From the NCBI RefSeq assembly GCF_963676685.1, contig NC_092355.1, forward strand, positions 10,912,001-10,976,000: 64,000 nt of DNA, given 5' to 3'. The translations under genes were made by a program, and so were the position numbers. Below, one piece after another: positions 1 to 49,518 of this stretch. Within the stretch, counting starts at the first letter, position 1, and each line of letters starts with the position of its first letter. A model generated the notes under the pieces. That model saw only the letters and a program-made list of their open reading frames with translations. It was not told the origin of the DNA and ran no database searches. This stretch comes from Mytilus edulis. Taxonomy: Eukaryota.

Positions 1-3000
1 ATTTAACATTCTTAGACTTACTGTTATGCCAATTGTCCGCGACACAACCATTTATATCGGGGTCGCTATTTTATTTTACAACCGCGCTGTAAACACGAGG
101 AGTTAATGTATTGTGTTCTGCCTATTTTAAGTATTTCAAGGTAAAATGATTACATTCTATATATCCATGTGTTTGAACTATTGTTTTTTGCATTTAGTTA
201 CAATTAATTTCTGTCCATCAACTTCTTTTCAAATAGATATACGAAAATTATATTAAAACGTGACTTGGAATATGTGTTTTCTTTCAATCGACATGTATGT
301 TTACTTACTTTTCGTTAATTGATTCTATTGCTAATAGTTCTAATGCATTGTTGTTCTTAACGCATCGTCATTAAAACAATTAAACAGTTTTGTAGGTTAC
401 TAACAGTATTGTTAATAGACTTTACAACAATAGTCTACATAAAAGACACAATGCATTGACTTTGGTTTGTAAAAAGCACTTTTCGGTATCCGTCCTGTGA
501 TTTCTTCTGCAGGAATTAAGGCTTGGAATTTTTTGAATTTTTTTTATATAGTTCAGTGACAGAACATACAAAGCTTGTGTATTATAACATTTTTGTACAT
601 ATATACGTGTTTGTAGTTGAAGATCGTAAAATACAAAATATATTAACTATTTATACATAAATGATTGGGTTTTATTGGTTTAATTGTATTAGGCGTCAGT
701 ATGCTGGTATGTTGCAATATATATACATGTAGATATATAAGTATATCATCTCATAATTTTTGACTCCAATAATGTAATAAACAAAAACAGAGTTGAACTC
801 TAGTACTAATAGTATCTATATATATCTATTAAAGTAGCACAGTATGACTAATCAATTGCTGTCTAATTTAACAGCAAATAATTACTTTTGTAATGGAAAG
901 TCTGAACCCTATCACCGATGTTTTATCTAACTGATACATATTTAAATGATAATAAAAAGCAGTGACAGCGTTCTCCAATATAACATCACAGTAGGATCAA
1001 ATGTCATTGAGTAGAAACGATGTAAAACAAAACATTTGCACGTTTTGTATGAATTAGACTAATAAGGTGAATTTAAATCGATACACCTGGAACGTATACA
1101 TATATATGAGTCTTAAGAGCAATGATAGATGAAATACAACTTTAATTTCTAGCGTATATGTTTTAGTTTTAAACATTTGGGTGATCATGATAACTAATGA
1201 CATTTGGTATCCTTATGGAAATAGTTCTATGGACAAGAACAAACATGACTTCAAAATATACTATACTTTTTGTGCTGACATGAACTATCATTGATATGGA
1301 ATATTACTGGTAACAACACTTTAAACGTTTAAAAAAAGATATCATATAGAACACAAACAATTACTTTTGAAATTGTGTATGCAATAAAATCTTCAGAAGG
1401 TCCCTAAATAATGGTATGATGTTTGCAAATAAGACAACTGACCACACTTTGTTGGCCAGTCACTTTCATTTTGCAAGTGCAACATGATGGTTGCAACATG
1501 GAACGCAGGACCGACGTCCGCTCATAAAGTAGCTCAGATTACAAACGTTTTGCGTGTAGTTCATATTGCTTCTTCTTTTTATGTTTTTTTGTTGTTGTTT
1601 TTAGTAGACTATTGTTTGTCTTTTGGTCTATTTTGTAGTTTGTTCCATTCCACTGAAAGCTTGTTTTGCAATTAGTGTTGACATTATTATTTCGTTTTTC
1701 CCCATTAATCATTAACACATAGGTATTATTTATTGGGGAGGGGGGGGGGGTGAAGACATTAAACTTCATAGTTATTCGGATTTCATGTATATGAAAGACT
1801 TTATTATGTTATTCATGCCATAAGTACAAAAAAAAGAATGCACAAATGATATAACGTTTTCCTTGATCCTACTCTTATAACGTCATATCATAAGAAAACC
1901 TTCAACTTGTATTACATCAAAATGGATTTTGCAATACTGTTTTTTTCTTTATTTAAAGACCGACTTCGTGTTTAATGTATACATTTGTTAATATCAGAAT
2001 CCTGCTTATCAATAGTAAACTAAATGTCGTAAAACCTTGATTGAGTAGCAGGCGGGCCTTAGCTTGTTGATCATTTTTGATAATATTTGACTGTTTAAAA
2101 CAATCGCAAATAGCATAACTGCATGAGTTCACAGTACTAATAAAAAAGGACGAATAATTTGGAATACTTATGGATAACTAATTGACCATTAAAAGCACAA
2201 TGTTCATTTTTATATAAAAAAGTATAGCTATACTGTCATCAGCGTGGTAATATAGATCTATATATTGCTTTCATCAATAATTAGATTTAAAATGGAATAT
2301 TTTAGACATTTCCTTTTATGTGTTTATCAACCTAAAAAGATCGTGATTCATTTCCCAGTAATTGTAAAAACAAGTTTTTGTATCTGATATTGTATTTTAA
2401 ACTAAATATCCGTAGTATAACATAATATGCACGTTCATATTGATATCAAAGAGACATACATGTTCGTGTTCAATGATATTAACATAATCAAAAGCTCGAA
2501 TGACTTGTAGTTTAACTCCGTTTATTTTCTTTTTTTCCTTTTGTTGAAATTGTGTTGTAATCCTTTGAAATGTTAATTTAGTAATGTTGTTATGTACTTA
2601 ACTGCATTTTATTCTTATTATTTGTATTGATTTTAGTGTGTAGAAATGTTTATACACGACTCAACTTATAGGTAAAATGTTAAGTTGCAAGACAACAATT
2701 ATATCCCATATTTAAATCGCCTTGTACTTATCTTTTATTAACATTAAAGTATTGGTAGAAAGTAATAAGAACATGGATTGACCTATAGCACATTGTAGCA
2801 ATGGCAATGTTATATATTAGTATATCTAACAGACACTCTTTCTATTAATGTTAGAGATTAGTAGTATGAGTTAGGCCACGCATTACATGACGAGATAAAA
2901 AGATTCTTTTCAAAGTTTTACGATATGTTTTAAGTTATTCTCTTACCATAAAACACGACCTGTGAGAACACACGTTGACAGTGATACAATATACTCTGAC

Positions 3001-3300
3001 CTTTATTGTGAGGCAACCCAACGTCATTAACAACAAATATAGTTGTCTATATACAGTACAGAATACGCTCGATAATGATAATATAACATTTAGAGAGCGA
3101 ACATTGTTTCTATATGAACAAAAATCAAATCATGACTGTTTATAATATGGGAAAGAAAGACACTGTTTAGTACCCGGCATTCTGATTTCTTCTAAAAGAT
3201 GTAATGCTTATTATTTGTATCTCAATTACAGTTCGTGTTGCTTAATCTTTAGTTTTCTATGTTGTCTCATGTACTTTGATTTGTCTGTTTGTCTTTTTAT

Positions 3301-3641
3301 TAAATAACTGTTACAACTTTCAAATGGTTGCATTAGTCTTATTACGACTGTTACAACCCTTTATGCGTTTAGTCAGTTTATGTATGACTGTTTTCGAGTT
3401 GGGATAGTTGTAAATCAACTGTTACAGATTTGAAATAGTTGTATCAGTCCTTTAATGCCTGCGACAGTTATTTCTTGCGTTGTTGCAGTCGATTTATGTT
3501 ATAGAGAAACACTTTTAAAGTTGGGACAGTTACAAAATAACTGCAGAAGTGAAATTTAACAACTGTTACAACTTTAACAAACATCATCAGTCTTAGAACG
3601 ACTGTTACTGGTATGGACAGTTGTTTTTTCGTCCAGTAGTG
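3301..3641. mobile_element. One end of a CACTA/EnSpm element (other end deleted)
   Basis: Absent from the paralog at ~29190. Ends in GTCCAGTAGTG (reverse complement CACTACTGGAC) and has repeated subterminal ACTGTTAC motifs at ~3307, 3347, 3418, 3562 and 3601. Confidence 0.7.
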
Positions 3642-4644
3642 ATCTTTCGCCCGTCCCTCTTTCTTGTAATTAACGGTCAGTGATATTACTTACAATGTTC
3701 ATTAAATTAGTATACTGATATCAATATGTTGTTAAAGATCGTATAGTACAACTTCCATATATATGGGTGAAGGGGTTATTGTTTGTTTTTCGTTCATTTT
3801 GTAAATAAATTAGGCCGTTAGTTTTCCCGTTTGAATTGTTTTACATTGTCATAATATAAGACCATTGACACAACTAACAATGCTCACATACTTATTATAT
3901 AGATACTAGTCTTGTTAGACATAATATAATATAACTTCATATAGAGATGGGGATTACTTTGTTCTTTGTTTGGCGTCGATGTGCTGTCACATTGCAGTAT
4001 ATTTATAGCATTTCTTATATTTCATCTTCAATAATTGAATCATAAAACACTTACTTTAACTGATGGTAATATCTACCTATTTCTATATAAGTGGCACAGT
4101 ATGAATAATCTATTGGTTTCTAATTTAACAGCAAATGATAACTTTGTAATGGAACGTTTGAACCCTATCAATAATTGTTTATCTTGTTCGTACATAGTTA
4201 ATTAATAATAAAAGGCAGTGACTTCGTTCTCTTATATAACAGCACAGTAGGATGAGATGTCATTGAGGACAAACGATGTAAAAATAAAACAACATAAATG
4301 AAGACGTTTCATTCCAAATGGATATCCTACGTCACATTCAAACTCATAAAAATACCAGGGTTATAATATGTTCTGACCGATACAGGTTTCATATAGATTA
4401 GAATCATAAGGAGAATTTAAATCAATACACATGGAACGTCTAATTATTATACGAATTTAAAAGCAAGGAGAACCTTCAATTTCAAGTTGCTACGGTTTGT
4501 AATGATTTGATTATTATTCGTATTACAATTCCAGTATTTAGCTTACTTTCCAATCCATGAATATTTTCTAATGAAAGTGAACTATTTTAAAATTCAAACT
4601 TGAATTTTATCATGTGTAGTATGGTTAAACCGAATAACCTATTC

Positions 4645-7250
4645 GTTTACAGAATCGTATAAACTTTGAAAATCAAAATTCTTTTGATAAATCGTTGAGC
4701 AATTTTACATGTATGATAGAGGACATTATGTCGCCTTTCTTTAAAACGATGCCTTATGTAAACAACAAGCCGTATAAACCAGTTAATTATTTTGATAAAC
4801 CTTGGTTCAACACACGATGCAAGGAACTTTATCGATGTTATATAGATTATCTACATGTTTTCAATCGTTCAAAATCAATTGTAAACCATACAAACTTAAC
4901 TTGTGCAAAGAGGGAATATAAAGTTATGGAACGTCGTCTTAAGCGAGAATACCAACGTATAGAGGGTAATGCAATGGACTTTTTGAAATATAGTAACCCA
5001 AAACTGTTTTATTCGAAATTTAGGAAAAGGACCGAAAAGAAAAATAATGTACCGTTACAATCTTTCTATGAACACTTTAAAAAATTGTCTTCTGTGAATA
5101 TAGACAATACATGTGACGAAGATTTATTTAATAACACTGATGGCGATTGTGTATATCCTGAACTTGATGAAGTGATTACAGAGGAGGAGATTTTAAAAGC
5201 CATCCGCAATTTAAAGCGCAATAAAAGTCATGGAGTAGACGGTATTTTGAATGAATATTTTATAGAGTATAAAGATGTTTTTATGCCAATATTAGTCAAG
5301 GTTTTCAATGGTATTTTACAATCCGGTATATTCCCTACTAGCTGGGCCATTGCTATACTTGTGCCTATTTTCAAGAAAGGAAACGAAGACGATCCAAATA
5401 ACTATAGAGGTATAAGTCTTGTAAGTAATTTCGCAAAATTATTTACTTCCGTATTAAATCAACGTTTGATGGACTGGTCTGATTCTTTTGATGTCATTAC
5501 TGACGCCCAGTTCGGCTTTCGCCCCGGTTTTGGAACTGTAGATGCAATTTTTGCCCTAATTTCGGTAATTTTTAAGTCCCTATCAGCAAACAAACGTCTT
5601 TATTGTTGTTTTGTTGATTACACAAAAGCATTCGATACTGTTCAAAGGCTAATGCTATGGTATAAATTATCAAAAATTGGTATTCAAGGTAAACTTTTAA
5701 CTGTTATTAAATCTATGTATACTAATGTGTCTACTTGTGTATGTGTTGATGGTTTTAATTCTGAATACTTTTCCAATGAATTGGGCTTGATGCAGGGAGA
5801 GGTGTTATCTCCCATACTTTTTTCATTATATGTTAACGATTGTGAAATGGCTTTCATTAATAGTAATGCCATACCATATGAGATGAAAGAATTGAATTTA
5901 TTTTTACTTATGTATGCTGATGATATGGTTATTTTCTCAGAATCTGTTTTGGGGTTACAAAATATGCTTGATACATTATATGAGTATACATCAAAATGGT
6001 CATTGAGTGTTAATATTGATAAAACTAAAATTGTTGTATTTAGGAAAGGTGGAAGAGTTCATGTTGATGAGAAATGGTATTATGATAATAAGGAAATTGA
6101 AGTTGTTGATAATTTTACTTACCTTGGTGTACTTTTAAATTTTAATGGCAAATATAATATGTTACAACAGAAATTGTCAGAACAAGGTAGAAAAGCAATG
6201 TTTGCTTTAAGAAGAAATGTGAAAAGTATGTGTTTAAACTATGTCACTTTGTTATCACTGTTTGATACTTATATAAATTCTTTATTGAGTTATGCAAGCG
6301 AAATATGGGGTGCACATAAAGCCCCGGCAATAGAGAGAGTCCACATGAACTATTGTAAAAATATACTTGGTGTTAAGTTGTCTACTAACAATGTTATGAT
6401 ATATCAAGAACTAGGTAGATTGCCTCTTATTTTCGCAAGAAAATGTAAGATTTTCAAATATTGGTTTAAATTGCTAAATACTTCAAACTGTATATTGAAA
6501 AATTGTTATAACTACTTGTATTGTGAATTAGAGAGATGTCCAAATAATAAGTGTAACTGGTTGTATTTTATAAAGAACGAACTTTTTCTTATTGGTTTAG
6601 GTGATGTATGGTATAGCCAAAACCTTATTTGTGACTTGCCTGATGTATATTTTGCTGTCATAAAGCAACGTTTATACGATTGTCTAAAACAAGAACTTGA
6701 TGCTCAGTTACATATGTCTCCAAAATGTTCTAATTATAAATATATGTTAGATAATTTTTGTCTGCAATTTTATTTATGCAAACCAATTCCAAATGTTTAC
6801 AAAAAATGTATAACAAAAATAAGATTAAGTAGCCACAACTTAGCTATAGAAAATGGAAGATTTTATGGTATAACAAGAAATAATAGAATATGTACTTTTT
6901 GTATAAATGATATAGAGGATGAGTTTCATTTCATCCTCAAATGTCCACGTTTTCAAGGTTTTAGAACAATTTATATTAAGCCATTTTATTGGAAAAAACC
7001 GTCGATGTACAAATTTATCAAACTGATGAGTACTAATAATGTAAAAGAATTGTGTAATTTAGGTAAATTTATTTTTAGATCTTTTAAGCTTAGATCCGAA
7101 ATGTTAAAAGAATGTTTGTTTATCATTACAGCACCTTCTGCTGTCACATAGTCTGTGTTTATGTATGTATTATATGTTTTATTGATGTTGATATAATTGT
7201 ATACCTATAGTTTATATAGACTTTGGTAATAAAGATATAAAGATATTTTT
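4645..7250 (+). mobile_element. 5'-truncated non-LTR retrotransposon (LINE; probably RTEX- or CR1/L2-group)
   Basis: Homology to the paralog stops at 4644 and resumes at 7269. The 3' end is AATAAA followed by the short repeat AAGATAT-AAAGATAT. Clade assignment is inference. Confidence 0.92.
4695..7151 (+). CDS. LINE ORF2 reverse transcriptase with C-terminal Cys/His finger; endonuclease domain missing (truncated)
   Basis: Motifs KPWF, NYRGISL, QFGFR, FVDYTKAFDTV, GLMQGEVLSP, YADD, YLG, HNLAIENGR and CxxC...EDEFHFILKC. The frame is open up to the 5' junction, so the TTG start is not a real start. Confidence 0.93.
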   Translation: MSNFTCMIEDIMSPFFKTMPYVNNKPYKPVNYFDKPWFNTRCKELYRCYIDYLHVFNRSKSIVNHTNLTCAKREYKVMERRLKREYQRIEGNAMDFLKYSNPKLFYSKFRKRTEKKNNVPLQSFYEHFKKLSSVNIDNTCDEDLFNNTDGDCVYPELDEVITEEEILKAIRNLKRNKSHGVDGILNEYFIEYKDVFMPILVKVFNGILQSGIFPTSWAIAILVPIFKKGNEDDPNNYRGISLVSNFAKLFTSVLNQRLMDWSDSFDVITDAQFGFRPGFGTVDAIFALISVIFKSLSANKRLYCCFVDYTKAFDTVQRLMLWYKLSKIGIQGKLLTVIKSMYTNVSTCVCVDGFNSEYFSNELGLMQGEVLSPILFSLYVNDCEMAFINSNAIPYEMKELNLFLLMYADDMVIFSESVLGLQNMLDTLYEYTSKWSLSVNIDKTKIVVFRKGGRVHVDEKWYYDNKEIEVVDNFTYLGVLLNFNGKYNMLQQKLSEQGRKAMFALRRNVKSMCLNYVTLLSLFDTYINSLLSYASEIWGAHKAPAIERVHMNYCKNILGVKLSTNNVMIYQELGRLPLIFARKCKIFKYWFKLLNTSNCILKNCYNYLYCELERCPNNKCNWLYFIKNELFLIGLGDVWYSQNLICDLPDVYFAVIKQRLYDCLKQELDAQLHMSPKCSNYKYMLDNFCLQFYLCKPIPNVYKKCITKIRLSSHNLAIENGRFYGITRNNRICTFCINDIEDEFHFILKCPRFQGFRTIYIKPFYWKKPSMYKFIKLMSTNNVKELCNLGKFIFRSFKLRSEMLKECLFIITAPSAVT

Positions 7251-7969
7251 TTGGAAGAACAATGGTCCGGATTTCGCAGTATGAGTATTTCTTTATATAT
7301 ATATATATACCAACTTCATGTTTATGGAAGGAATTTATATAGATCACAATTGTGCTCATCAATAGAAAATTTTATTTTCACAACTTTGATTGAACAAAAC
7401 AGTTTCGCTCCTTTTTGAAATCATTGCGATTCCAAACATGTGTGTTTATTTATTTAGTGTAATCCTTATTCGATATTTCAGATTAGAACATCGATAAACT
7501 ACACTTGTCTATGTAAGACATTCGTGTCCTTGTTACTTATCTAGAATTTAATTCCAGTCATATTTAATAATCCGTTCTTAAAATAGACACGATCGCTTCT
7601 TTGATGTCGTGTATCCCCGTCTCATTACATCATAATAAAGCCTTTACTGGATATAAAATCAAAATAAATTGAGCAATATCATTAGATCCATGCATCTCTT
7701 AAACTATTAATTTATCAAGATTAAAGATGTGAATATAGTAAAAAGAGATTTCAAAGTTGAACTAATCGTATTTGACATCAGAAATACGAATTTTTAAAAC
7801 ATACAATTTTTTTTTCATGAATTATGCATAATACAGCGATCCCAGAAATATAAAATTACTTCGTATTCATTGATCTATCTTGTAATGGAAAGAGTTCTCA
7901 ATGACAATCATACAACATTTTGTTAATATTTCTTCTTGATAAGACAAGAGAAAGATGCCGAAGTTGATT

Positions 7970-8001
7970 TATAAGAGACGTAAAGCGCCTTGTGGATCAC
8001 T
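7970..8001 (+). promoter_or_regulatory. Candidate core promoter paralog (TATAAGAG + TCACT)
   Basis: Homologous to 34483; TATA at 7970, Inr A at 7999; GTAAGA donor downstream at 8172. Confidence 0.4.
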
Positions 8002-10974
8002 GATCTGAGAAGTACATATGTTTTTACATTACTAGCTTTAATCAATTCAATTCATAGTCTTTTGATCCTTGTGTGGATTGTTTTTAATCAATAACAATAT
8101 TTTTCTCATGTTTTTTTCTCGTGTTATATTTGATAGAAGAAAAAAAAATGATTTACGACTTAACCTATGGTGTAAGATGGAAAGTTGCATAAAAACAAAT
8201 TTATCACATTTATTATTCGCCTTTTATTTATCCCTCGTTGACATATAGTGTAATTGTTGTAAGTTATGCGTAATATGGATTAACCTATAGCAATGACAAT
8301 GTTTTATATTAGTATATCTTGCAGACACTGTTTGTAATTACTGTTAGGGAATATAGCATCAACACGCATTAAATGACGCAATAAAAGATGTTTGTCAAAG
8401 ATTTACGTGTTTTTCTCAATTATTCTCTTACCATAAAACACGATCAGTGCTAATACTCGTGGACAGTGATACTATATACTCCTCACTTTATTGTAAGGCA
8501 ACGACATGTTATTGGAAAGGTTTTAAATACTGAGCACGCGGAAAACAAATTATTTTAAGAAATAATTTCTTGTTTTTTTTTTAGGATTTCAAAAACAGAC
8601 AAACACATTAAACAGAAAACCTCTTTTATCATGTGTTATTGTTACAATATTATCAAGCTGATTTTCAAAAATTTATCATTCACTTTGTCAAATTTAATAA
8701 ATTTAAGAGACTGTAGTCAAGTGATTTTTTTCGTTTATTCAAGTCAATCAATTCTTTTTGTAGTTGGTTTGTCATCAACGAGTATGTTCGTATTAACGTT
8801 TACAATTTGTCATTTCGATTATAAATAGTTACTTGACTACATATTTGTATTCATTCTAATAACGCATCTGTACCATTTCAAAAGATGACAAGATCTTGCG
8901 CATTATTAATCTTAATTGGAAATTATAACGAGTTTTAACATTGTGTTTCATAAAAAAAATAAAAAATAAAGAAGATTTGTCTCTTTTCTCGTTTATCAAA
9001 CAATATATTGCATGATACAACAATATGCAGTAGCAATTATTGTCATATCTCTGATGCATGTATCCGTCTATGCAATTCTAATCTAAATGATAATAATGGA
9101 TACCAATTCCCTGCTGATTATGATTAATCCCCTTTTGGTGACAGTTGAGCAGTTCTTTCTATTAACTTGTATTATCATGCGGAAAGATCATTCAGACCTT
9201 TACGATAACGGTTCATTTAAATTTGTTATGTTTTATATTCCGATCAAACACGGTAAATACAAATGTACTCAGTATTGATGAAATATGGAATAGGTTTACA
9301 TCCATTATCACTAGTAGCACGATTTCAGTCTGAAACGGTCATTTTGGTCTGATCACATCTTGATTGACTGGATTTACCGCTAGAAAAAATCGTCAAGATA
9401 TTTAAGATAGTTCAGTCGCCGTTCAGATCGATAGCCTCATCAGGTAAATCAGTTCGTTAAGGCGTGTCAAGACGGAAAAGACTGAATCGTCTAGCGGGTT
9501 GTTTAGACCCGTTAAGACCGTGTCAGACCAAAACAGACCATGGATACAAAAGAACGTTCAAAATTTTCAGACCCTGTTTTGATCCGTTCAGTATACCGGT
9601 TTGATACCACGAGTTGCGCCCCTTCTACTCGATAATGTATTTTAGATTAATACATGTATATATGTATTTTATTATTACAATTTGAAGTATATTCTGATTA
9701 ATTAAAAAAAAAAGATTAAATCTTGTGTTAATTCTTTATTTCTTTTCTTGTTTTGTTGAGGAACTAATAAATTATTCGTCTATATATATATATGTTGTTT
9801 AGTTTTTAATAAATGTTTATTTATATAAATATATATTGATAATTAAATGCAAGGACGTACGTTAATTGTATACACACCAGAATGTATGCCATAAATTTAA
9901 CCTTGAAATGTTGTGAACACCGGTAAAAATGTTTTTTGTATTTGAAGATTAGTAACGGAAAATCCTAAACGTAACCTAAAAAAGTTAAGGAGATGTGGTA
10001 TGATTGCCAATGAGACAATCCACAGAAATGCAGCGGAGGCAAATTAACACAGTCATGCATATTTTTGTTTTATGCATGACAGTTTCTTTAATTCGTTTTC
10101 TGTTGATATATGTCCTAGTTTACCGTTGAAGCTGTTGCTTTTTTGGTATGTTTATTTTTTTTTCGTGCGAGTTACTCTATTAAAGTTGGAAACAAATATT
10201 CTCGACATTCGGAAATTCGAAAAAAGACTTCCCGGATCCCGAAACCTGATCATATAATGCATTCAGTCTCTGTCGGGACGGTGTTAAAGTATCACCGTAT
10301 AAAAATTTTCCTTCAAACAATATATCCTTATAATATTTATTTTCTTATCCATATAATATGTATATAGTACTTTGTATATACTTTGTATATATATATATGG
10401 CGTTGATTTAAAATAAAATCTGTTTTAGTTAAAACGGTCGAGTGCAATGGCACGTGCTAGTAATCAACCGGGTCAACAGGTAACAAAATCAATGATCCAT
10501 AACGTAAGAAAGTACATGCCTATTATATTTTACAATTACTCTCATCATCATTCTTGATAAAAAGGTCTAAACTTTAATAAAGAATGAATGAACACGTATT
10601 AGTGATGTCTGACCTTCAGTTTTTAATATAAATTAATGCTTATGTTTTTTTTTATATTGAGCAAAGTAACGAATGTGAATCTATTATACGTTAAAGGTTC
10701 TTACAATATCATATATGTCTAAACACTATACCAAAAGACCATGCAAAATATTTGAGCGCCGCATGTAAAACCATTAAAAAAACATGTACTGTTAGGAAGT
10801 TTGTTTAGTACTCAAAAGAAACGTTTCGCTTCTCTACTTATATAGTTTAGAGAGTATTCCTTTAAATTGTGTCAGTTATATAAAGTAGAGTGTATTTGTA
10901 TTCTATTTATTCATCTAAATGTATCATTATAATATACATTTTGTATTTCACAACTATATATACTATAAGTTGTA

Positions 10975-11035
10975 GTGTGATTGATTGTTGTTTAAAGTCC
11001 AGTGGCAAATACTTCATGCATGTTCAGGACCAGCT
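10975..11035. repeat. Short recurrent SINE/LINE-tail-like motif GTCCAGTGGCAAATATTTCATGCAT
   Basis: Recurs at ~20017, 21620 and 25705. Confidence 0.6.
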
Positions 11036-11750
11036 GTAAGTTTATGACATGTATGGAACTCACCGGTGTAGTTTTCACGTGTTATAATAGATAAAAGAAT
11101 AATTATTTTTTAAGATATCGAAACATAAAGGAGGCAAGGCGCATGGATTACCCGCACTTATCAGTTCTTTTCTCTTTTTTGTCTTAAAAAAAAAAATCGA
11201 TTTTTTTTTTATATGTTTATATAATTTACGATAACTGTGGTGTATACGTGCTGTCAGACGAAAGATACATATGTGCCCTCTAAATATCTTTTTTTACTAT
11301 GGATTGTTTGCTTTCGTACTGACGTTTAACACACAACTTTAATTACTGACTGTGATGTATGTAGAAATTCAAACGTACTGGAGAATGAAGGATGCAAATC
11401 CAAGCTTTGAATTAAAATGGTCATTAAATTTGCCACACAAATAAAAGAACAAGTGTAAGTGTTGGAATGACATATACAATATATCAACATGTGCATTGTC
11501 GGAGAATTTAATTTTGATTTTACTTTGGTAACTGGACAAAATTGAAGAGAGGCAGCCCAATCTTTTCTCCTTTTTGTTACGAGTACAAATAGATTTTATT
11601 GGCTTTATAGACATCGAATAGAATTCAGGGCATAACATTACGAAATATGATCTTCAAAATATACAATTTAATACCAATAACGTAACAAATACATTGTTTT
11701 TTTAGCTCACCTGGCCCGAAGGGCCAAGTGAGCTTTTCTCATCACTTGGC

Positions 11751-11825: not shown

Positions 11826-11829
11826 TAAC

Positions 11830-35607: not shown

Positions 35608-38600
35608 ATTAGATAATAATCCTGGTACTTTTGATAACTATTTCTACTGGATACATGTTGAGTGATTTATTATTTGAATACGAAACAGTAAGTTCTTTAA
35701 GCATCTCATTGCTGTTGACCGTTTTAATATCAATTATTTATTTATTTTGTTTTATCATATGTCCGTTTTATTGTAACTTATGTCATCAACCACATGATGA
35801 GGACTACACATTTGTTTAATTCAACCATGAATGAAACGAGTATTCAATCCTTTTTTCTTCTCTTTAGTCATTTATTAATTTCAATTGTCATTTTTTTTGT
35901 TATTCCTGAAGTCTTGAAAATAAATCAATGATAAGATATCTTGAATAAGAACTGTTTGTCATATTTCATTTTAATAAACATAAAGTTATGCTCATGATTA
36001 GGACGTTGATATTCGCGCCAAAAAAAATGGAGCCTATTATTCCATGAATTTTCGTTTATTTATGAAAATCATAGTTTGAGCTTTTAAGTTGTTTTGTCAT
36101 GATAGTTATCAAACGTACCAGGCTGATAACTTGATACGCCAGACGCGTGTCTTCATAAGACTCATGAACCAGACCGCTCGTTTGACATTTTGATGTTAAC
36201 ACTCATTGTTGAGTATTTGACAGTGAACTGCAGTTGAATTCATCTTCACCATTTGTAGATTTGACTGTGAATTGTTATCATACCACATCGCCTCGTTGTT
36301 TTATGAAAACGTATATTTAGCATTTAAAAGGATTTGAAGTTTTTACATATAATTTATAATTATTGAAAATTCAAATGAGAAGCAATATATTTCCTAATTA
36401 AAAAGAAAACAAAAGAAGTTGTTTTTCTTTGGTCAATAATGAAAAAAAGTCACTGATCCAAGAAAGTGCAGTAGCAATTAATTTCACATCTTTACCGCAT
36501 AAAACAGATTCTGTATCATTCTATCATTTTAATGATATCGTTGGAATATCATTTCCCAGTCTATAAGCTTGTTATGATTAATCCATTTCATTTGACATTT
36601 GAACAGTTATTTCTATTAATTTGAATTATCATGCGGAAAGATCAATTATACCTGTGCAATAATGGTTCATTTAAATTTACTTTCTAATAGTAAATGTATG
36701 AAATTTCAAATGTCGATCAAAGAAATATTTTGAAATTGTTATTACAAATGAACTCGGTATTTAAGAAATGTGGAACAAGGTATTTTATTCCACCACCAAC
36801 ATTCGTAATAATGTAAAAATCAACTATATTTCCTCACCGAAAATTACCACTTTGCTATTTTCTTGTGTTTTGCAATTTAGATGTTTAGTATCAAGTTGAC
36901 CTAAGCATGCTATTATAAAAACACATATTCTGTGTATGATTTCCATGTAGTTTTATTTGAGGTCAGCGAAATTGTATGACGTCTAAACTTTGGTGAAATA
37001 TTTGTACCTTCTAGCCTCTAATATGACTTTGTTCTTATCAAAATACTGTCTTTCAGGATAATCTCGTGCAATTATCTTGTAAGTGGGTCTTCTAAATTCT
37101 TTTAAATTGTAACTTGTCTAATAAGGGGTTAGACACTCGAAAGCAATTTAATTAAGAAAGCTTTTCTAGGCCGATTTTTCCAATGTTTTATACAAATAAA
37201 TTGTTCTTTTTCGTTACCTGTGCCCTAATTTCTGACCATAGCCTTCACATGTTTATACCATTCAATACAATATTGGTAACACGAATTATATATATAGAGA
37301 TCAATACTATTTACTGTTTTCATTGTGTTTGATTGCTATATACTATCATGGCAAATCAAATTATATGCAATATATAATGTTTAATAGGCTATTTTTGTTT
37401 GAATGTCCTTATTTTCCATATGTCCAGAAAGTTTTTAGTATATAAATAAGAAGATGTGGTATAATTGCCAATGAGACATCTCTCCACAGGAGACCAAATG
37501 ACACAGAAATTAACAACTTTATGTCACATTACGGTCGAATGTTTACAAACCCTTTTTTCCTACGCTTTTGAGGCAATTTTATAAAACAAAAATGAGACGA
37601 AAGACAAATTATTTTTATTTGATTTCGTATATCAGGCCAAATGTTGGAAAAATATGTGACATTGACCTCCTTTTTAATATTATTAGTAAGCAGGTTGTTG
37701 CCATGGATACACCAAAAAGGAATATATTGAACCATTCAACTACTGGGTATCAGATATGTTGAAAATACTGATTACATACATATGCACATATATGATACAA
37801 ACAGTAGGCTTTTAAAATTAGTAAGAAGGCAAAAAAGAGGGATGGTAAAATTTATGTATATTGCTATCTAACATTAGTACTTATTTAGTGACAAAATCCA
37901 TGTGGTTGTGCTTTTTTCAAGAAAAGAGCAGTAAAACTCCCATTACAAATCAGCGTCCTGCTTTACATTTTAGGAAGTTTTTATAACCATGGAGGTCCTC
38001 TTTGTTGAGCTTCTGCAAATCTCTCACACAATTTTGCCATTTGATTAGGGACTTTCCGTTTTAAATTTTCCTCGGAGTGCAGTATTTTTCTGATTACAAT
38101 TTATACTGCCCACACAGTGGTCGGCGTGTCAGCCACTGCATCATCTAGATTCTGGAAACCCTCTGCTGTCTACCCTTTTTGTTTCTTTTCTATGTTCTCT
38201 CTATGTATACAAGCTCCGTTTCTATGTTCTCTATATGTATACAAGCTCCGTCACAGCTATCAACCTGTCTACCTGAGCTCTAACCACCTTGCAAAATAAT
38301 CCAACTGCTTTATTTCTATGTGGATACATAAAATGTAAAATTGTTCTTCGAAATTCTGTGAACTACTAAATCTAACCAAATAAACGGAGAATGTGTCCAT
38401 ATGGGATACAGATAATGCCCCAGCTTGCATATAACGCTAAAAAAAGTCATTACACAAGAACGATAAAAATGACGTCACTCAAATTCGCACTGGATTTATG
38501 TTTTATGGTATTAAGCATTGTGTATACGTTTCAAAGAATTTAATAGAGGCAAAATAAAATTCGAGAACGGAAACTAATTGTTGGGACGTACTGTACGTAT

Positions 38601-39033: not shown

Positions 39034-41253
39034 TATAGAACATCGATTTCTATCATTTATTTCTTTAATTAAGCTGTGCGCGTTTTGGTGATGGCACGTC
39101 ATCAGGAATGATACAATTCATTGGGATATACATGTTGATTTACGTATGACGCGCACATTTTGTTATCCAATCCTAAAAACGGATTCTTCTAAAACATACA
39201 TGTAATGTTATCATTCATTTTTGAAAATATTTACCTCATTTTGACTATAAATAGTTATTACACTTAGTCTACATCTTTGTATTATTTATATGTAACGTAT
39301 CTTTATCAAGGCTCTATCTTATTGCGCATATTTTATTGCAATTATAAATTATAATTGGAAGCATGATATTTCCTATTTAAGAAAATACTTAAGAAGATTT
39401 ATCTCGTTCCTCATCAATCAGTAAATATGTCGCATGATACCACAATGCATATGGGAAGTATCAATTATTGTCTAACCTCTGGTGAATATCAACAGTCTAC
39501 GTAATTCCAATATATGAATGATATAACTGGATATCTACTCACTGTCTATAAGCTGATTCTGATTAATCCAGTTTTGTTCTTTTAAAATTTCTATTATCTT
39601 GTAGTATCATGCATAAACATCATTAAGACTTTTGTGATACCGGTTCACTGCAATTTACTTTATCGTCGTACATTATACTGTTTCAAATGCAAATTCAAGA
39701 TTTGTTATAACATATGAACACAGTGTTTTGATGAAATATGGAATGAAGATGTGACCACATATACTCTCAAATACGAGCAAAATATATTACTTGGAATATA
39801 CAATATGAGAGGAAAAGCTAAAAGAATCACATGTATGCCCATCGGAGCGAAACTTTTGACAGGGAAAGCCTATAATGGTATATACACACATATATGGTAT
39901 GACGGCCAATTTCCAAACTTTCCATTGGAGAGCAAAACAAGTAGATGTTAATACTATAGACCACCGTGCGATCACCCATATCTACATAGAAGCGATACAA
40001 GCACAGCCAACACAATAATATACTAGACGTCGATCAACGTAGCCAGAAATCAATTGAAGATACATATGTCATTAGATGTTCATGTTTTTCAACTTGACAG
40101 AGCGTTTTGGTTGGTGATCTGAGTATGCATATAATAATTGTAATCGTAGAAATGACAAATATACGCTCCAGTGACTTTAAGCATTGCCAGTAATTCATTA
40201 ATTTGCATATGAAATTTATATTTACTGAAATCTTCTGCAGCACTTCTGGTTTCTTTTTTTTTAACAAATAAGGTTTATGTTTATAATATACTTGTACATT
40301 GTAAGCGCAACATAGTTCATTTTATATCGCTAAAAAAATAACAGGATTAAATGCCTTTTCGAAGAAATTTATTAGTTTATAGACTGGATCAACTTATTTT
40401 GATCTCAACATCAAAGTTTGTTGCACATGATCATGTTTCATAAGTTTGTTTTATTGAATACAAGAGAGATACGTTTACTGAATCAACTATTTCAAATGAA
40501 AAACGATCGCAAATAAGTTATGTTACTACTGCAAAACTGGAAACCAGAACTTGTTACGCTTTTCTTTCAAATTATAGCATACAAACTAATGTTCGTAAGT
40601 TTAGTTCTGCAATACATAATTGTCCTGTCCATGTTGACCTTTGCAGGTTATTTGATATAAAAAAAAAGTAACATAACAAAGAATAGCAAACCCCATGAAA
40701 AAATCAAAACAGAAAGTCTTTTATCAAATGGCATACTCATTCAGATGACAAAAAAAAAACTATCATATTCCTGATTCAGAACCAGCATTTATTTATGTAC
40801 AATACTGGTTGATTAATTCGGGTTGTATAGCTAAAGAAGAAAAGCAGATTATGTAGATTACATAAATGTTGTATTATCCGTCTACGAAAACAAATACATT
40901 TCGTGTTTTAATTCCTTGGCAGTTTAAACCCTTTTAGAGGATATTGTTTTCGAATTAAAAAAAAAAGGTTTGAGAAATGTAATATAAGGCGGAGAAGTAA
41001 ATGAAATAAAAATACAAACACAAAACAGACACTCAACGCATTTGTTCTTTATTAATTAAAGCTCAATATATATATTATCAGCATTGTTTTAATACATATA
41101 TCATGTATATAGAGCCAAAAAATATATTCTATGGCATTGAAGTTGTAAACAAAACAACTTTGAAGTGACTAATTTGTATGCATCTATTATTACACAAAGG
41201 TCGATTATAGCGGATGCAGATTACATATAGTTATATTGATTAGCTCTTTTCGT

Positions 41254-41285
41254 TATAAGAGATGTGAAACGTATTGTCGATCATC
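41254..41285 (+). promoter_or_regulatory. Candidate core promoter (TATAAGAG + Inr-like TCATC) of cassette B
   Basis: TATAAG at 41254, TCA adenine at 41283 (29 nt). Confidence 0.5.
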
Positions 41286-41677
41286 GATCTGAGTACTACA
41301 TATGTTTTAACGTTATTGGCTTTAACTAATTGAATCTATAGCCTTTTATATGGTTACATAGCCTGTGGATTACATTTGAATAACTTACCACATTTAACTA
41401 ATGTTGGTTTCTCAAATTGTATTCCAGGGTAAATGAGTATTCTTATTTGTGGTAAAAAAAAAGTTAAGGAAACACATTGAACTATGAAAAATCTAATGTA
41501 TATCTTTTGATAAATATAAATTTGAAAATACATGAAATATTTAATATCAAAAGTCCTCTTAATGGGAATACGGAACTAACAAACATACTGAAACATCGTC
41601 TTTTTATCGAAACTAGTGAATAAATAAAATTGTGCTACGACTATTTATAAACCTTGAATATTAATTCGAAACAAAAC

Positions 41678-41737
41678 ATGGATAACGGAGACTATTATAT
41701 CCGTGATTTTCTGAATGACTTCATAAAGGATATAAAG
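41678..41737 (+). CDS. Candidate alternative first coding segment B of the GPCR (MDNGDYYIRDFLNDFIKDIK)
   Basis: ATG in AAAACATGG context, 20 open codons, AAG|GTAAGG phase-0 donor. 52/60 nt and 17/20 aa identical to segment A; 3 of the 6 changed codons are synonymous. Confidence 0.7.
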
Positions 41738-42849
41738 GTAAGGAGTTCTTTGAACCACTTATAATTTAAATAATCATGATGATATGATTAATGTCTAGCA
41801 AACTAGAAAACTTGTGACATTTTTTTTTCTCTAAAAAAATCAAAATTGTACAATTGATAAAGTTACAAAATAATGTTATGCCATTAGAACATACATGACA
41901 GTGAAGTTTTTAAAAGCATTAAAATTGTATAACTGATGAATTTAGGAAAAAATATCTATCATTCTAAGATTAAAGTAAAATTACCAAATGGTACAAACAG
42001 TTATTAGTATTATAAGAAAACGTATAGACCATATTTTCATGTTGATCTGTCACACTGAATTCTACATTTACGATGTTATAAGGGATGAAAGCTAAAACAA
42101 GACAAATATCCTTTGTGTATATTTCAATGTTACCTATAAGTGAAAATGGATCGCAGAAACACAACGGAGAAACATCTGTGTTAACATAATGTGTTACATT
42201 GCAATACTGACGTATTTGTCATAGTTTGTTTGTACAAAAACATATATACAAATAGTGTGCATATGCGCGGAATTGTGTTCTTTTTTTAAAGTCTATAATA
42301 AAGTAAAATGCAAAATATATTTAGAGATATGTGTTGTTTTTTTTCTCCAAAATGTCGTACTTGTGAGAATTGTGTACAGATAAAAAATAACGGATAATGG
42401 TCAACATTAACAATATTTCTTTACCACAATTGACCCACTTTGATAGTCTGTTAAATTTGTTTAGACTTGTTGACGTTCAGTTTTAAGCGTACCTTACAAT
42501 GATATATAGAGAAAATAAATTTTGTAAATAAACGGACTGCATATAAAATGTTTTATATGTCAATACTAATGTACTAATGTTTTCTTTTAATATGTCATTA
42601 AAAACGTAATCGTTAAGTGCAGTGATAAATGTGGTTCAATTATATTGCTCATTTACTCTATGATACCAAAATTAGTGATAATTTACAAAACAAATGTCAC
42701 CACAAAATAAGACTAAACCTGCGGTTCACAATATAAAAAAACGTCTTTGTTGAAATAACTACTAAAAATCATTATCTGTGTAGGAAGACTATTTGTTATA
42801 ATTAACATATCAGCAGGTTAAGAACTGTTCAATATTTATAAAAAAAAAA

Positions 42850-43232: not shown

Positions 43233-46200
43233 ATGCCCACATTCTTGCACCAGTTTATTTGTACTTTTTTATTATCTGTTATTATAAATCGTAGTCTGTT
43301 AGTTGGTGTGCTTACAACATAAGATATTGAAAAATGATTAAGTATAAAAAATCCAAGTTGAATACTAGTGGAAAAATAAATGACAAAAAAGAGCTAACAG
43401 TTTTTGTTAATTAAAGGGTGACATTTATACAGTGATGTCTCGACCCATATCAACACTACGTTTCGAGCTGATATGGGGGGCCGATATGGAAAATGCCATG
43501 TATTTAACTCTATGCAATATTTTCAATAATAACTAGATTTGAAATGGAATATTTTGGGACATATCATTAGTGTTGTCATCATTATAAAGAAAAAAGAGAA
43601 TTGTACAACAGTTGTATACGACAGTTATTATTATGTTAATCAACATCTCCCTAGTATTACATAATTTTTTTTTTTTTTAAATCAAACGGATGTGATTCCT
43701 ATAGTTCCGTTTTTAATCATTTTTTCTCTATCTACAAAGGGTCACTTAAAACAGAATTTGACTTGACATTGCATTCCAATTAAAATGCACTTTTATATTG
43801 ATCTATTAATTTAAAGCACTTAGTAATACTATTTATAAAGTAGCTCTAAAGATTAGCTTTATATTTGTTATTGGCTTAGTAGAAGAAAAGGTTATAGTGT
43901 AGTGGGACAATTGTCAACATTTGTATTGAAATACATTCAACCATCTCTTATATTTAATCAACCAACGTATGACAAATTTTTGAGTTAATAAAATCGACTT
44001 TGAATAGAACGACGCATAATTGACATAATACATTTACACATCTTATCGAAAATTGTTTGCTAGTTATCCCAGTCATATTGTTTTCATGATTTTAATGTCA
44101 TATGGCCTTTTTCATGGAGTTGCATTATTTAGTTTCTTTTCATATCCGTACAACAGTATGTTAACTTGTATATACTGTGCATGTATTTGGCCCGAAATAT
44201 CTAGAATCATGAAACTAAACATTGTCAATAATTGTGGAACATAAACAACTGTGAACCCTGAAAAAAATGAGAATTGAAATGGGGAATGTGACAAGTGGAC
44301 AACAACCCTAACAAAGAACAGAAACAAACGAAGGCCACCAATTATAGTTTAACACAGCAATCAAATGCATGATTTTGTGAAAGCACTGCATGCGTATTAT
44401 AGCAATCAAACAACATCCCATGCTTACATATTTATATATATTGAAAAAAAATAATTAAAAAAATGATATGTTTATCTTGTTCTCCAATTTTTATTATTTG
44501 ATTAAATCGATCAATATACACCTGATAGTTTTTCTGTTATTAAACTTATGTAAGGCTTGGTACAATGGCAATCGTTTACAATTAAGGACTAATGCAATCT
44601 ATATTGCCAAATCTATTCACGTAAGAGATTTGTTACTCTTTCATAGATGTAATTCCTTTATCTTTACAAATCGAACGATTGGAATTGCTTAACTAAAACA
44701 ATTGGGAGGTATACTCTTAGGTCGAAAGTAATAACGGACTTGTATCGTTTATTGTGCATATTCATAATATCAGAAAAGGAGATATATATCATTTTATGGA
44801 TATTTTCTATGGTAGTTTTAGATTTCCTCCGTTCATTTGCTTGTTTTTGAAATTGTAATGAAGTCTACTCTATCGTTAGTTCAGTAATGTAGTAATCAGC
44901 CTGGTTGTATATAATCCTTTCTCTGTTATCTGGTATTTATATAATGTAGTGTTTGACTTCAACTAGATTCATTCTTGTTAATTTTGTGAACTCTTTTAAT
45001 CAATGTGTATTTATCGCTTGTCCACATTTAATATCATTATTGTAATTAAGAAGAACAATGGATTGAACTACACCTATATCAGGTATATCTATATGTAATA
45101 TATCAGTATGCATCGCAGACACTCATTAATAATTTCTGATAGGGATAAGTCAAATGGATTTGTACCTTGATCATCAGCACGATATATTTTTAGATAAACG
45201 ATAAATTTCGCAATAAAAAGATTTATTTCAAAGAATATCAAGTTGTTCACTCTCATCATATTTCCTTTAAAACACGACCATAGAGACATTTTACTGTGTC
45301 GCTACAACTGACATTTCATGGCTATCCCGACAGTACTGTGTCAATCAAAAGTATGATTGATGCCACGCTATTGAGTGGGATAGTCATAATCAATTCAAGA
45401 ATTGTTAATTCTATAAAATTGGATAATTAAAATATCATTCATGCCAATAATACCATATTCGTATAATGAATATGACAATGAGATTTTCTCTATCACTATG
45501 ACATTCGTTAAAGAAAAGAATGCTATCAACAATTATTGTATTTGAAATTCATTTATATATATTTGAAGCTGATTGATTTAACAAACACTGATTTTGACGA
45601 TACAAGCCAGTCCCCTCACTCACATGATTCAAACTTCGTAATATTTACGTATTTAATTGGATTTATGTCTTTTGAGTTTTGAGTATTTTGAAGTTGTACT
45701 TACTGGCTGATATTGTGTAGACGGAACATGTGTTTGGCGGACATAATTTTAATAGTGCTGTCTATGATGAGTTTATGTATAAAGTTCTGTGTTATGCAAT
45801 ATTCTTTCAATAAATTTGATCATACAATTCTCAGGTAGAAGTCATTAAGAAGTCATCTGAATTTTTTTTCTAGTTGATTATTATTCAATCGGACATAGTC
45901 AATCAACTAAAGGTAATCTATGTGTTTGTATCATTGAGACGACACCGCAACGACAATTTTTTTATTGAATATCTAGATATCGGATTTATGGTTCATAACA
46001 TGTTGAAATGTTTCTTCGACTAAGCTATTATTGGCTCATGTTTTGTTTCACTTTTCAGTTCCAGTTTAGTTCACTCAATTGTTTAACCTTATTATAATTG
46101 CTAGTTACCTATCAAGTGATAAAGAACATTGAAACATGACAGTTCTGAATGCCTCTCTTTACTGCGTATATGATATGTACGCAATTTATACATAAACGTT

Positions 46201-46815: not shown

Positions 46816-48420
46816 ATAAACACATAATAAGACTAGTGATATGAAAGCCATCGTTCAGTTATTTAAATTAACTAAGTAAGAAGACTGGGGTTCAGGGGTT
46901 TTCCAATTTTTTATTTATCCCATTTGCTGAGATAAAACCTGATTGAATTGCATAAACGCCAAATGCTACGAGGTCACCTCTGAACAGGGAACTCATGGTA
47001 TGCGTGCATCGTTAAGTAAACAACAATCAATCGGTAATTTTCAATATCATACAAACTGCCTAACAGTATTAAATATCGAATACATTACCTCTCACCAGAT
47101 ACTCGTATTTTTTTCAAATGGAATGAAATTCAAAATACCACATGCCTCTTCATAACGATACTATAAAATATAATTTGTCTTACTATTTTTGAATTACATC
47201 GGGTTTAGTGCATCATGTGTGCATTATAGAATGTCTACTGGCAAGACGGTTTTCCTTTAAATCTAAAAGAATAGACGTGTAGAACGGCAATTCAATTTTC
47301 CATAAATGTCACTTCATATATGCAATTGACACTTATTGCCAATAATACATTCAATTTCACTAGACAAATTAACTTACATCTTTCGTTCAATCAATTTTGA
47401 TGATACTGTCGGTGATATAATGATATTTGGAGTGAGATTTAACGCTTAAGTTCAAAGGTGCATATAGTTGAGGCTTATTCGTGTTTAAAGTTCTAGTGTT
47501 GTTCATTCCACGTTTGCAATACTTCCAGAGTGTTCAAATTAACAACAACACATTCGCAGTTTAATATATTATGAAATTAAACTAACATACACATGCAATG
47601 TCATTTTACGATAAGTTAAATGTAAAGAAAATGTACAATTATACAGAAATAGAAGAAAATCGCCATTGCGTCCCACTAGATTTCTAACTTACTAGCCCGT
47701 TATTAATATCTCTTTTATTTGCTGGTGATTAAGATTAAAACACAATTATGACTACTGTACTATATTTTTTGACATTTTAAACTATATTGTGTCTGTTTGT
47801 TTTGTTTACATATCGTTATCAATATAGCATAACGTTATGCGACTTTCATACAAGTGGGAGGTTTGGCTATATAAACAGATTTATTCCAACATTGTCTACA
47901 TAAGAAAATGCATGTACCAAATCAGGTATATGACAGTTGTTTTCAAATTGTTTGATATGTTTACGTTTTTAATTTTGCTAATGATTATTGATTTTTTTTC
48001 GGCGTTCGATATTACTGTGAATGTACTTTTAACTTTGTTTAATACACAATTATACGGTGTACTGATTTACAGATGCACTGCATTTTATAAAAGAACTAGT
48101 AAGGGTAACTTATCGCCTTTTTGTTTGTTTGCTTTTTTTAAAGGGGGATAAATGTTTTTTTTTCTCGGATTGGAAAAGAGGGACAGTGTGTGGGTATCAA
48201 TTGAATTATCAAAAGTTCATGAATATAAACAGCTTCTTTTTCAGTTTTATCCAAGGCTCCTTGTTGAAGACAGTTATTTGACCTGTAATGGTTACGATTA
48301 CAAATTGTGACTTGGATTGGGAGTTGTCTTTTTTGCACTCATACCACACTGATATCTATATATTTTCATTAACATACTTATAAATTGTAAAGTGATTAAT
48401 GTGTATGTTATCTATTTCAG

Positions 48421-49518
48421 ATAAACCAATCCAAACATCTATCATGTGGAAATGGTTCAAATCAAACATGTGATGACCAGTGGATAACCAATCGAGGCTC
48501 TGGTCAGGGGTCAATTGGGTCAGATGTATTCACATATGTCACCCCAGTGATATTTGCTGTAGGAATAATCGGGAATACAATTTCCTTATTAGTGTTTCTT
48601 ACTAAAAACATGAGGAAGTTGTCGGCAAGCGTATATCTGGCAGCCCTATCAACAGCTGATCTAATGGCTTTGATATTTTATGTCCTGGTTGAGTGGATTA
48701 GAAAAGGAATACCAATCGGGTCAGGACAGGTAACAGCTCCGTTTCTGGAAAGTAATGGAGTATGTCAGATAATACTGTTCATGTCGTATTCTTTTCGTTT
48801 CCTTTCGGCTTGGCTTGTAGCATGTTTTACATTAGAACGATATGTCGGAGTCTGTCACCCGTTGAAACGCAAGGACGTCTGTAACTTACGTTCTTCAAAA
48901 AGAATCGTTTTCTTTGCAGTGATTATTTCCTTTGTTATAGCCTCATTCCGACCATGGCTGAGCGAAGTGCGTTATGTAGGGCCAAATGATGTTCCATCGT
49001 GTACTAGAAGACTTGAACACACATACCTCTCATTTGTCTATGACTGTATTTTTGGAGTATGTATCACCTTTCTACCATTTCTTATTATCACAATACTAAA
49101 TACATTAATCATTCGGAAATTAATTATTCGGAACAAAAGACACCGACAGGTCAAAATTATAACAGAGGAAAGTATAATTCGATTAGAATTTACCGTAATT
49201 TTGATAACTATATCATTTTGCTTCATCGCTTTCAATACGCCATATGCCATTATATGGTTCAAACATTCTCTACAGATGAGTTCTATGCGAATGGAGGATA
49301 GTGTATTCGTACCAACAAATCAAAACTTATTGATTTTTACAAAGACAATATTTTTTATGAATTATTGTATTAACTTTTTCCTGTACAGTATAACAGGTGC
49401 TTACTTCCGAAAAGAACTCAACATGTTATTTACATATAGAAGTAAAGTTTATCAAAGTTATCACAAATGCTCCCTCCCTAACTCTACAGCAACAACTCCA
49501 CAATCATGGATTCCTTAA
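48421..49518 (+). CDS. Rhodopsin-like (class A) GPCR, FMRFamide/peptide-receptor-like; terminal coding exon holding the extracellular N-terminus and all 7 TM helices
   Basis: ORF 48547-49518 has TM1 GIIGN, TM2 LAALSTADL, TM3 FTLERYVGVCHPLK, TM6 FCFIAFNTP and TM7 INFFLY. The frame stays open back to 48421 (INQSKHLSCGNGSNQTCDDQWITNRGSGQGSIGSDVFTYVTPV, with sequons NQS/NGS/NQT), directly after the acceptor TATCTATTTCAG. There is no in-frame ATG before TM1, so an upstream phase-0 coding exon is needed. Confidence 0.93.
   Translation: MNQSKHLSCGNGSNQTCDDQWITNRGSGQGSIGSDVFTYVTPVIFAVGIIGNTISLLVFLTKNMRKLSASVYLAALSTADLMALIFYVLVEWIRKGIPIGSGQVTAPFLESNGVCQIILFMSYSFRFLSAWLVACFTLERYVGVCHPLKRKDVCNLRSSKRIVFFAVIISFVIASFRPWLSEVRYVGPNDVPSCTRRLEHTYLSFVYDCIFGVCITFLPFLIITILNTLIIRKLIIRNKRHRQVKIITEESIIRLEFTVILITISFCFIAFNTPYAIIWFKHSLQMSSMRMEDSVFVPTNQNLLIFTKTIFFMNYCINFFLYSITGAYFRKELNMLFTYRSKVYQSYHKCSLPNSTATTPQSWIP

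Follow-up and report, generated by a model that had tools for sequence, protein, structure and literature searches.

The stretch of DNA analysed here, referred to below as the window, is a 64-kb segment of the 1.37-Gb Mytilus edulis genome (C12:10,912,001-10,976,000) that is AT-rich, with a GC content of ~30%. It contains the single coding body exon of a rhodopsin-family G protein-coupled receptor (GPCR) gene with three exons, together with the 5' region of that gene. Upstream of the body exon, and on the same strand, lies a tandem array of paralogous 5' units. An initial annotation of the window had read this array as about eight homologous promoter/first-exon cassettes feeding one constant receptor exon, in the manner of the clustered protocadherin and UGT1A genes.

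The constant exon occupies positions 48421-49518 of the plus strand of the window and encodes the whole seven-transmembrane (7TM) domain, with all seven helices inside this single exon. Its open reading frame (ORF) is that of a rhodopsin-family GPCR, matching Pfam 7tm_1 with E = 6e-25 and 88.6 bits relative to a cut-off of 30.5. Its acceptor, at 48420/48421 after TTTCAG, is in phase 0. Eight codons upstream of this acceptor the frame is closed by a stop codon, and no in-frame ATG precedes the first transmembrane helix, in agreement with the initial annotation that this exon has no start codon of its own. When the exon was compared with database proteins, in a search kept separate from that of the upstream exon 2 described below, its best relatives were Mytilus proteins, with orthologues that are 90-97% identical; the receptor is named TRHR-like, GPR139-like or FMRFamide-receptor-like, varying by source. 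A tblastn search of the DNA from ~75 kb upstream of the window as far as 48421 found no 7TM-like sequence, and it thus holds true that none of the upstream units contains 7TM coding sequence. Duplication of the whole gene followed by loss of the 7TM exon was considered as an origin of the units and rejected, as there are no 7TM relics among them. Fragments of a 7TM pseudogene with stop codons are present at C12:10,836,438-10,836,980 on the plus strand, ~75 kb upstream of the window and upstream of all the same-strand 5' units.

The N-terminus of the annotated receptor is supplied by one of these units, cassette c. The 385-residue RefSeq model XP_071141297.1 is exactly the translation of 34909-34968 (MDVGDTYIRDFLNDFINDIK) followed by 48421-49515, and its implied splice junction, 34968^48421, is one that had been predicted from the sequence of the window. 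Cassette c spans 34481-35316 on the plus strand. A TATAAG box at 34483-34488 precedes an initiator (Inr)-like A at 34512, from which exon 1 (~34512-34659) runs to a GTAAAT donor. Intron 1 (34660-34847) is followed by exon 2 (34848-34968), in which the ATG at 34909 opens a run of 20 codons ending at a phase-0 GTAAGG donor. The cassette closes with a copy of a sequence that we call module F (35191-35316). A second unit, cassette d (41253-41755, plus strand), has every signal intact: TATAAG at 41254, an Inr-like A at 41283, exon 1 at 41283-41428 with a GTAAAT donor, and exon 2 at 41617-41737 with an ATG at 41678 and a GTAAGG donor. Its coding part, 41678-41737, reads MDNGDYYIRDFLNDFIKDIK. In a self-BLAST comparison the two cassettes and their flanks (34138-35086 and 40905-41868) are 75% identical.

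The anatomy of the cassettes was defined by aligning c and d with the corresponding cassettes of two paralogous genes, paralogues C and A. All four share TTTATAAGAG ~29 nt upstream of an Inr-like TCA, a leader exon with a GTAAAT donor, a ~188-nt intron with an AG acceptor, and an exon 2 of 121 nt in which the ATG opens 20 codons that run to a phase-0 GTAAGG donor. The coding exon of c and d, which comes after a leader exon of its own, a 188-nt intron and a conserved AG acceptor, is therefore the internal exon 2 of a two-exon cassette. It is not the first exon that the initial annotation took it to be, and a first exon with a donor and no acceptor is not what we find in any of the four cassettes. 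The variable peptide has only 20-21 residues, and a core of the form YI.DFL.DFI..IK is kept among c, d, the e-type exons introduced below and the orthologues; it is not a large diversified functional part of the protein. AlphaFold places a helix at residues 4-21 with a low confidence score (pLDDT) of ~50, which has no bearing on function. Since the 20-residue peptide has a conserved core, the effect of cassette choice on the protein would be small, and any diversification would lie mostly in the promoters.

Self-BLAST and module mapping identify seven units in the window, all on the plus strand and belonging to three classes: the products of a recent block duplication (a1, b1, a2 and b2), the complete cassettes (c and d) and a degenerate unit (a3). 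The units begin near 2211, 7968, 28106, 31614, 34481 and 41253, with the seventh, a3, further downstream. The homologous units of the initial annotation are therefore real and start where it placed them, although they do not form one series, and two degenerate units that it had listed at ~43300 and ~44450 are a single split relic. Unit a1 (2211-3028) comprises an a-specific 5' part (2211-2600), a GT directly after 2671 and module F (2877-3028), and has no ATG exon. Unit a2 (28106-28914) is a recent duplicate of a1, with 94% identity in the a-specific part and a donor GT after 28567; in both, the last codon before the donor is an in-frame TAG. Unit b1 (7968-8520) carries TATAAG at 7970, an Inr-like A at 7999, a GT after 8171 and module F at 8340-8520, and its exon-1 homologue (7968-8140) shows 73% identity to c over 7968-8136. 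It has no ATG exon; in the b units the leader-exon homologue continues instead into another donor region, and no homologue of exon 2 can be detected. Unit b2 (31614-32176) is a recent duplicate of b1 (93-96% identity) with its donor GT after 31810. The only ATG of b1 that is open into the donor begins an 8-codon frame (MIYDLTYG) and is probably a chance feature, because the twin b2 has no ATG in a frame open to its donor. Unit a3 (43502-45299) is a degenerate a-type copy split by ~1.2 kb, consisting of fragments of the a5 piece (43502-43588 and 44816-44896), a donor-like region (44980-45134) and module F (45167-45299).

The first four units result from a single recent tandem block duplication; a1 and b1 with their flanks (2082-4544 and 7269-9308) align at 91-92% identity with a2 and b2 and theirs (27973-30123 and 30925-32983). 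A TATAAG box precedes the Inr-like TCA by ~29 nt in four of the seven units (b1, b2, c and d), and the a units have nothing homologous to this motif. An ATG with a frame open into the constant exon is confined to c and d among the seven units, and the remaining five, if spliced directly to 48421, would be unable to yield a full-length receptor. The proposal of N-terminal cassettes upstream of the receptor exon is thus sound in so far as an ATG exon is needed and more than one intact same-strand candidate exists (c and d), and fails for the five units without a proper N-terminus.

The relationship between the classes can be followed through their modules. A GT does follow position 34968 of c and 41737 of d, as it does the four a and b positions given above, but homology among the six donors, claimed for all of them, is limited to the a/b group on the one hand and the c/d group on the other. 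None is detectable when the a/b donors are compared with the exon-2 donor of c/d (z = 0.1), and the similar distance from donor to module F (264 nt versus 284 nt) is the sole hint of a common origin. For module F the claim of a shared core fares better. The 8-mer AAACACGA, expected ~1.07 times per strand, is found at 2951, 8436, 28837, 32093, 35252 and 45270, the six places reported, five of which had been given one base off; it also occurs at 91, 14093 and 50679. The wider module scores 109 between b1 and c, compared with 41.8 +/- 5.5 for shuffled sequences, and the copy at 45270 in a3 aligns to that of c with z = 11.4, so that module F is genuinely homologous across the classes. Module E, whose reference copy from self-BLAST lies at 8792-9308 on the plus strand, recurs at 32442-32983, 33609-34126, 36238-36782 and 39205-39969. 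Downstream of the receptor gene an inverted relic of the donor region and module F is present at 59940-60311 on the minus strand, and a further F-like match lies at C12:10,996,859, also on the minus strand.

Searches of the whole genome with the a, b, c, e, F and E modules returned matches only at C12 10.56-11.00 Mb, near three close paralogues of the receptor. The 7TM exons of these paralogues (A, B and C) are at 10,561,604, 10,723,255 and 10,767,215, all on the minus strand. Paralogue C has the full order of e-type exon, b-type unit, c-type cassette, a5-like piece and 7TM exon (at 6778, 12043, 15818, 18907 and 21695 in the reverse complement of 10,760,001-10,790,000). This order is complete only in paralogue C, with parts of it in A and B; on the upstream side of paralogue A, coverage past 10,595,000 came from the genome-search matches only. 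As the order is partly common to the paralogues, the multi-unit layout is older than they are. The 7TM exon of the window is ~87% identical to that of paralogue C (84% over a span including the flanks) and cassette c is 81% identical to its counterpart there. Within c, the segment 34909-35316, which reaches from the coding part of exon 2 to the end of module F, is 94-100% identical to C12:10,773,307-10,773,750 (minus strand), whereas the 5' half of the cassette, upstream of the ATG, is only 73-84% identical; the former segment is a clear gene-conversion tract. The coding part of c exon 2 is identical to that of paralogue C, and RNA reads from exon 2 alone therefore cannot separate the two genes. 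In paralogue B the 7TM exon (C12:10,722,602-10,723,941, minus strand) has an insertion of ~137 nt and a TAA stop codon, and the protein P0026 ends at 228 residues; this paralogue is probably a pseudogene or a mis-modelled gene.

Two further types of unit lie outside the window. Four e-type ATG exons of 21 codons, with the consensus MMTK..SYIQDFLSDFINEIK, are all intact and followed by GT donors. Two of them, e1 (L024:5900-5962, MMTKCISYIQDFLNDFINEIR) and e2 (L025:8287-8349, MMTKRISYIQDFLSDFINAIK), are located at C12:10,895,900 and 10,908,287 on the plus strand, with donors after 10,895,962 and 10,908,349; the 7TM exon of the window lies 64 and 52 kb downstream of them. The others are upstream of paralogues C and B. 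The conservation extends into ~550 nt of upstream flank, which e1 and e2 share with their counterparts at these two paralogues. An e-type N-terminus is used in the models of M. edulis P0026 (paralogue B, which has no c cassette) and M. trossulus XP_063405703.1. No 7TM relic is found by tblastn between the e exons and 48421, and the receptor exon of the window is the only possible same-strand downstream partner of e1 and e2. Just downstream of e2 (L025:8400-8600) is a short dispersed repeat, unrelated to the cassettes, of which more than 40 copies with 88-93% identity occur on many chromosomes. The second type comprises three older u-type cassettes upstream of the window (C12:10,847,673, 10,863,005 and 10,880,331). 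These have lost the TATA box, and the exon-2 homologue survives only in the last two, where the ATG and GT donor have gone; they show the effect of neutral decay on such units. A metagenome scan with the exon-2 core returned no match.

We consider that this locus is probably the outcome of nested local duplications of a 5' module, of which c and d are still complete in the window and the others are partial copies. The canonical layout runs from a TATA/Inr-like promoter through a ~148-nt non-coding exon 1, a 188-nt intron, the 121-nt exon 2 and a long intron to the 7TM exon at 48421; the start codon is in exon 2, whose 20 codons are predicted to encode an N-terminal helix. The 5' module, but never the 7TM exon, has been copied locally many times through nested tandem duplications. 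Cassette c is the copy represented in the RefSeq model and d its sister, with a1, a2, b1, b2 and a3 being partial copies that have lost the ATG exon. By our count the locus holds the annotated c, the intact sister d, the intact older e1 and e2, and at least eight decayed or partial copies. We infer that d or e may be used in addition to c and that a and b are probably inert.

That d is probably a working alternative to c is suggested by the way in which the two have diverged. In a tree of the 5' halves c and d are sisters (97/97 support) with equal branch lengths (0.12 and 0.11), which places the tandem duplication that produced them within the lineage of this gene. Exon 2 of d is 85-87% identical to that of c, as opposed to 74% for the upstream flank. 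The amino-acid differences of d, at positions 3 and 6, fall only where the family varies, and YIRDFLNDFIKDIK is intact. Some 15 critical signal positions and the open frame have been kept through 0.11 substitutions per site. Cassette d may also be the one used by orthologues. Models of the orthologous gene in three other Mytilus species have MDD-type N-termini, the nearer of the forms to the ancestral one. These are M. trossulus (XP_063418151.1), M. californianus and M. galloprovincialis, where the same 7TM exon is preceded by MDDGDNY.. in VDI17396.1 and by MDVGDTY.. in XP_076083964.1. By elimination, d probably has its orthologue in this MDD-type exon.

If several cassettes are used, the choice between them would be made by the promoter. 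Were exon 2 of d to follow exon 2 of c, its first codon in that frame would be TGA; the coding exons of c and d must therefore be mutually exclusive, and transcription from c must be accompanied by skipping of d exon 2. Alternative use of two to four cassettes seems plausible, and we put the odds that this gene really employs two or more coding cassettes at about even. A broader generalization is that the Mytilus TRHR/GPR139-like cluster has a conserved multi-cassette architecture, in which old e-type and younger c/d-type cassettes, all with a promoter, a leader exon and an exon for the N-terminal helix, are kept intact across paralogues and species and chosen by promoter in a mutually exclusive way; this is possible, though less likely than not. 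If it were true, it would represent a small-scale version of the promoter-choice logic of the protocadherins in a molluscan rhodopsin-type receptor.

Several observations weigh against this account. XP_071141297.1 carries no isoform label in RefSeq, which under NCBI convention denotes a single annotated product and makes frequent use of alternative 5' ends less likely. The 90%-identity protein cluster of this sequence contains no isoform of the gene with a d-type or e-type N-terminus. The choice of c in the RefSeq model could itself have been driven by homology, given that the coding part of c exon 2 equals that of paralogue C. The retention of d is suggestive, but a rough estimate puts the chance of it under neutrality at ~0.1, which is only mildly improbable. 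The positional orthology between d and the MDD-type exons is one that we infer. The inertness of the b units is likewise unproven, as b1 and b2 combine good TATA/Inr geometry with strong GTAAGA donors.

The strongest competing explanation is that only c is used, with d, e1, e2 and the rest being inert by-products of duplication that have not yet decayed. We judge this to be a real possibility, though clearly the less probable one. It would account directly for the single RefSeq product and its use of c, the older u-type copies show that such units do decay, and the estimate for the neutral survival of d is not negligible. It is less easily reconciled with the ~15 critical positions and open frame retained by d, with the avoidance of the conserved peptide core by its substitutions, and with the intact MDD-type exons used in the models of three other species. 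The e-type exons pose a similar difficulty, since all four are intact and two gene models use them.

A different role can be envisaged for the a and b units, which might be alternative non-coding leader promoters that splice into an exon-2 acceptor (34848 or 41617), altering expression and the 5' untranslated region and leaving the protein the same. The b units lend themselves to this idea, with TATAAG ~29 nt before the Inr-like A and strong GTAAGA donors. Each of the three paralogues, moreover, has a b-type unit upstream of its 7TM exon; the unit is complete in C and B and represented in A by its 3' part only. However, the b-type TATA box is mutated in paralogue C, the donor has changed from GTAAGA to GTGACA in both C and B, and the identity of the b unit between paralogues (71%) is close to the highest values of the intron, which range from 60 to 70%. 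Because of this intron-like identity, the mutated TATA box and the changed donors, the b-type units look unconstrained. No transcript of the kind is annotated, and we consider such a role unlikely. At most the a, b and a3 units would be extra leader promoters of this type; more probably they are inert.

The architecture originally put forward, in which all of about eight units are working promoter and first-exon cassettes that generate many N-terminal isoforms, now appears very improbable. The features that inspired it are genuine: the units are on one strand and each has a GT donor, the TATA/Inr-like motif is kept in b1, b2, c and d, and a single constant exon has no ATG. Against it, a1 and a2 have an in-frame TAG, b2 has no ATG, a3 is decayed, and four of the units derive from one recent duplication. 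In addition, the paralogues have kept neither the TATA box nor the donor of the b type, c and d each have a coding exon that is internal and has its own acceptor, the variable part is limited to 20 residues with a conserved core, and RefSeq annotates one product. Finally, the notion that the units belong to a dispersed repeat or transposon family lying by chance upstream of a GPCR, an eventuality that the initial annotation had itself raised, is rejected for this assembly in spite of the abundance of transposons in the window, because the a, b, c, e and E queries have no copies outside the GPCR cluster at C12 10.56-11.00 Mb.

These transposons include an ORF of 818 residues for a long interspersed nuclear element (LINE) reverse transcriptase (Pfam RVT_1) at 4695-7151 on the plus strand. 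It is inside copy I (a1/b1) of the recent block duplication, at the point where the alignment with copy II (a2/b2) breaks. The two copies are separated by an 18.4-kb CACTA-type transposon (9309-27701) with identical CACTAGTAGCACG termini and a 3-bp TAT target-site duplication, whose empty site is visible in copy II at ~32983. Within this element a unit of ~502 bp is repeated about four times (11824-13934). Towards the end of the window a 252-residue ORF on the minus strand (62815-63573), with a match to DUF3504 and a weak one to QRICH1, may be a transposon-derived or domesticated gene fragment. Rfam and transfer RNA scans of positions 1-43600 of the window gave no matches.

The favoured explanation, nested duplication of a 5' module with retention of a few complete cassettes, has different consequences depending on how many of the cassettes are used. 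If c, d and e all are, the expression of a mollusc receptor would have been diversified by copying promoters and start-codon exons and not whole genes, and the decayed u, a and b copies would illustrate how such cassettes arise and die. With c as the only cassette in use, the locus would exemplify ordinary partial tandem duplication in a repeat-rich bivalve genome. Paralogous pseudo-exons of this kind can also mislead gene models, as the disagreement between the two M. galloprovincialis annotations over the N-terminus illustrates.

We found no description of such an architecture in molluscan GPCRs in the literature searched, but parts of it have counterparts in other systems. Like the alpha and gamma protocadherin clusters and UGT1A, the mussel locus has same-strand paralogous 5' units upstream of a shared coding sequence, a donor for each unit and a promoter-like motif in the b, c and d types, and translation of the shared exon depends on a unit upstream of it. 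Unlike in those systems, only two of the seven mussel units in the window are coding, and the variable part is a 20-residue peptide with a conserved core and not an ectodomain or the substrate-binding half of an enzyme. Moreover, a complete mussel cassette has two exons, the coding one with an acceptor of its own, and its alternative use is putative.

A closer parallel among invertebrates is provided by the Drosophila Gr39a and Gr28b genes, in which alternative large 5' exons are spliced to common 3' exons (PMC2204066). These are also 7TM receptor loci where tandem 5' exons share downstream exons and where exons are gained, lost and decaying. The alternative Gr exons, however, encode most of the transmembrane domains and so bear on ligand specificity, whereas the mussel 7TM domain is entirely in the constant exon, and insect Grs are not rhodopsin-type GPCRs.

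Vertebrate GPCR genes with alternative promoters and 5' exons, such as ADGRG1/GPR56 with its many non-coding first exons, are comparable in having several 5' exons with their own promoters and one coding body, an arrangement that mainly affects where and when the receptor is made. The mussel cassettes differ in being recent paralogues of one another that carry the start codon and a short N-terminal helix. The locus can lastly be compared with partial tandem duplicates of gene 5' ends, with which it shares nested local duplication of the promoter, the leader and parts of the intron but not of the gene body, and the loss from many copies of an ATG, a TATA box or a GT donor (the u-type cassettes, and the ATG exon in a and b). 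What distinguishes it is that c, d, e1 and e2 keep every signal, and that the order of the units partly recurs in the paralogues, completely so in paralogue C, which a pure junk model would not predict.

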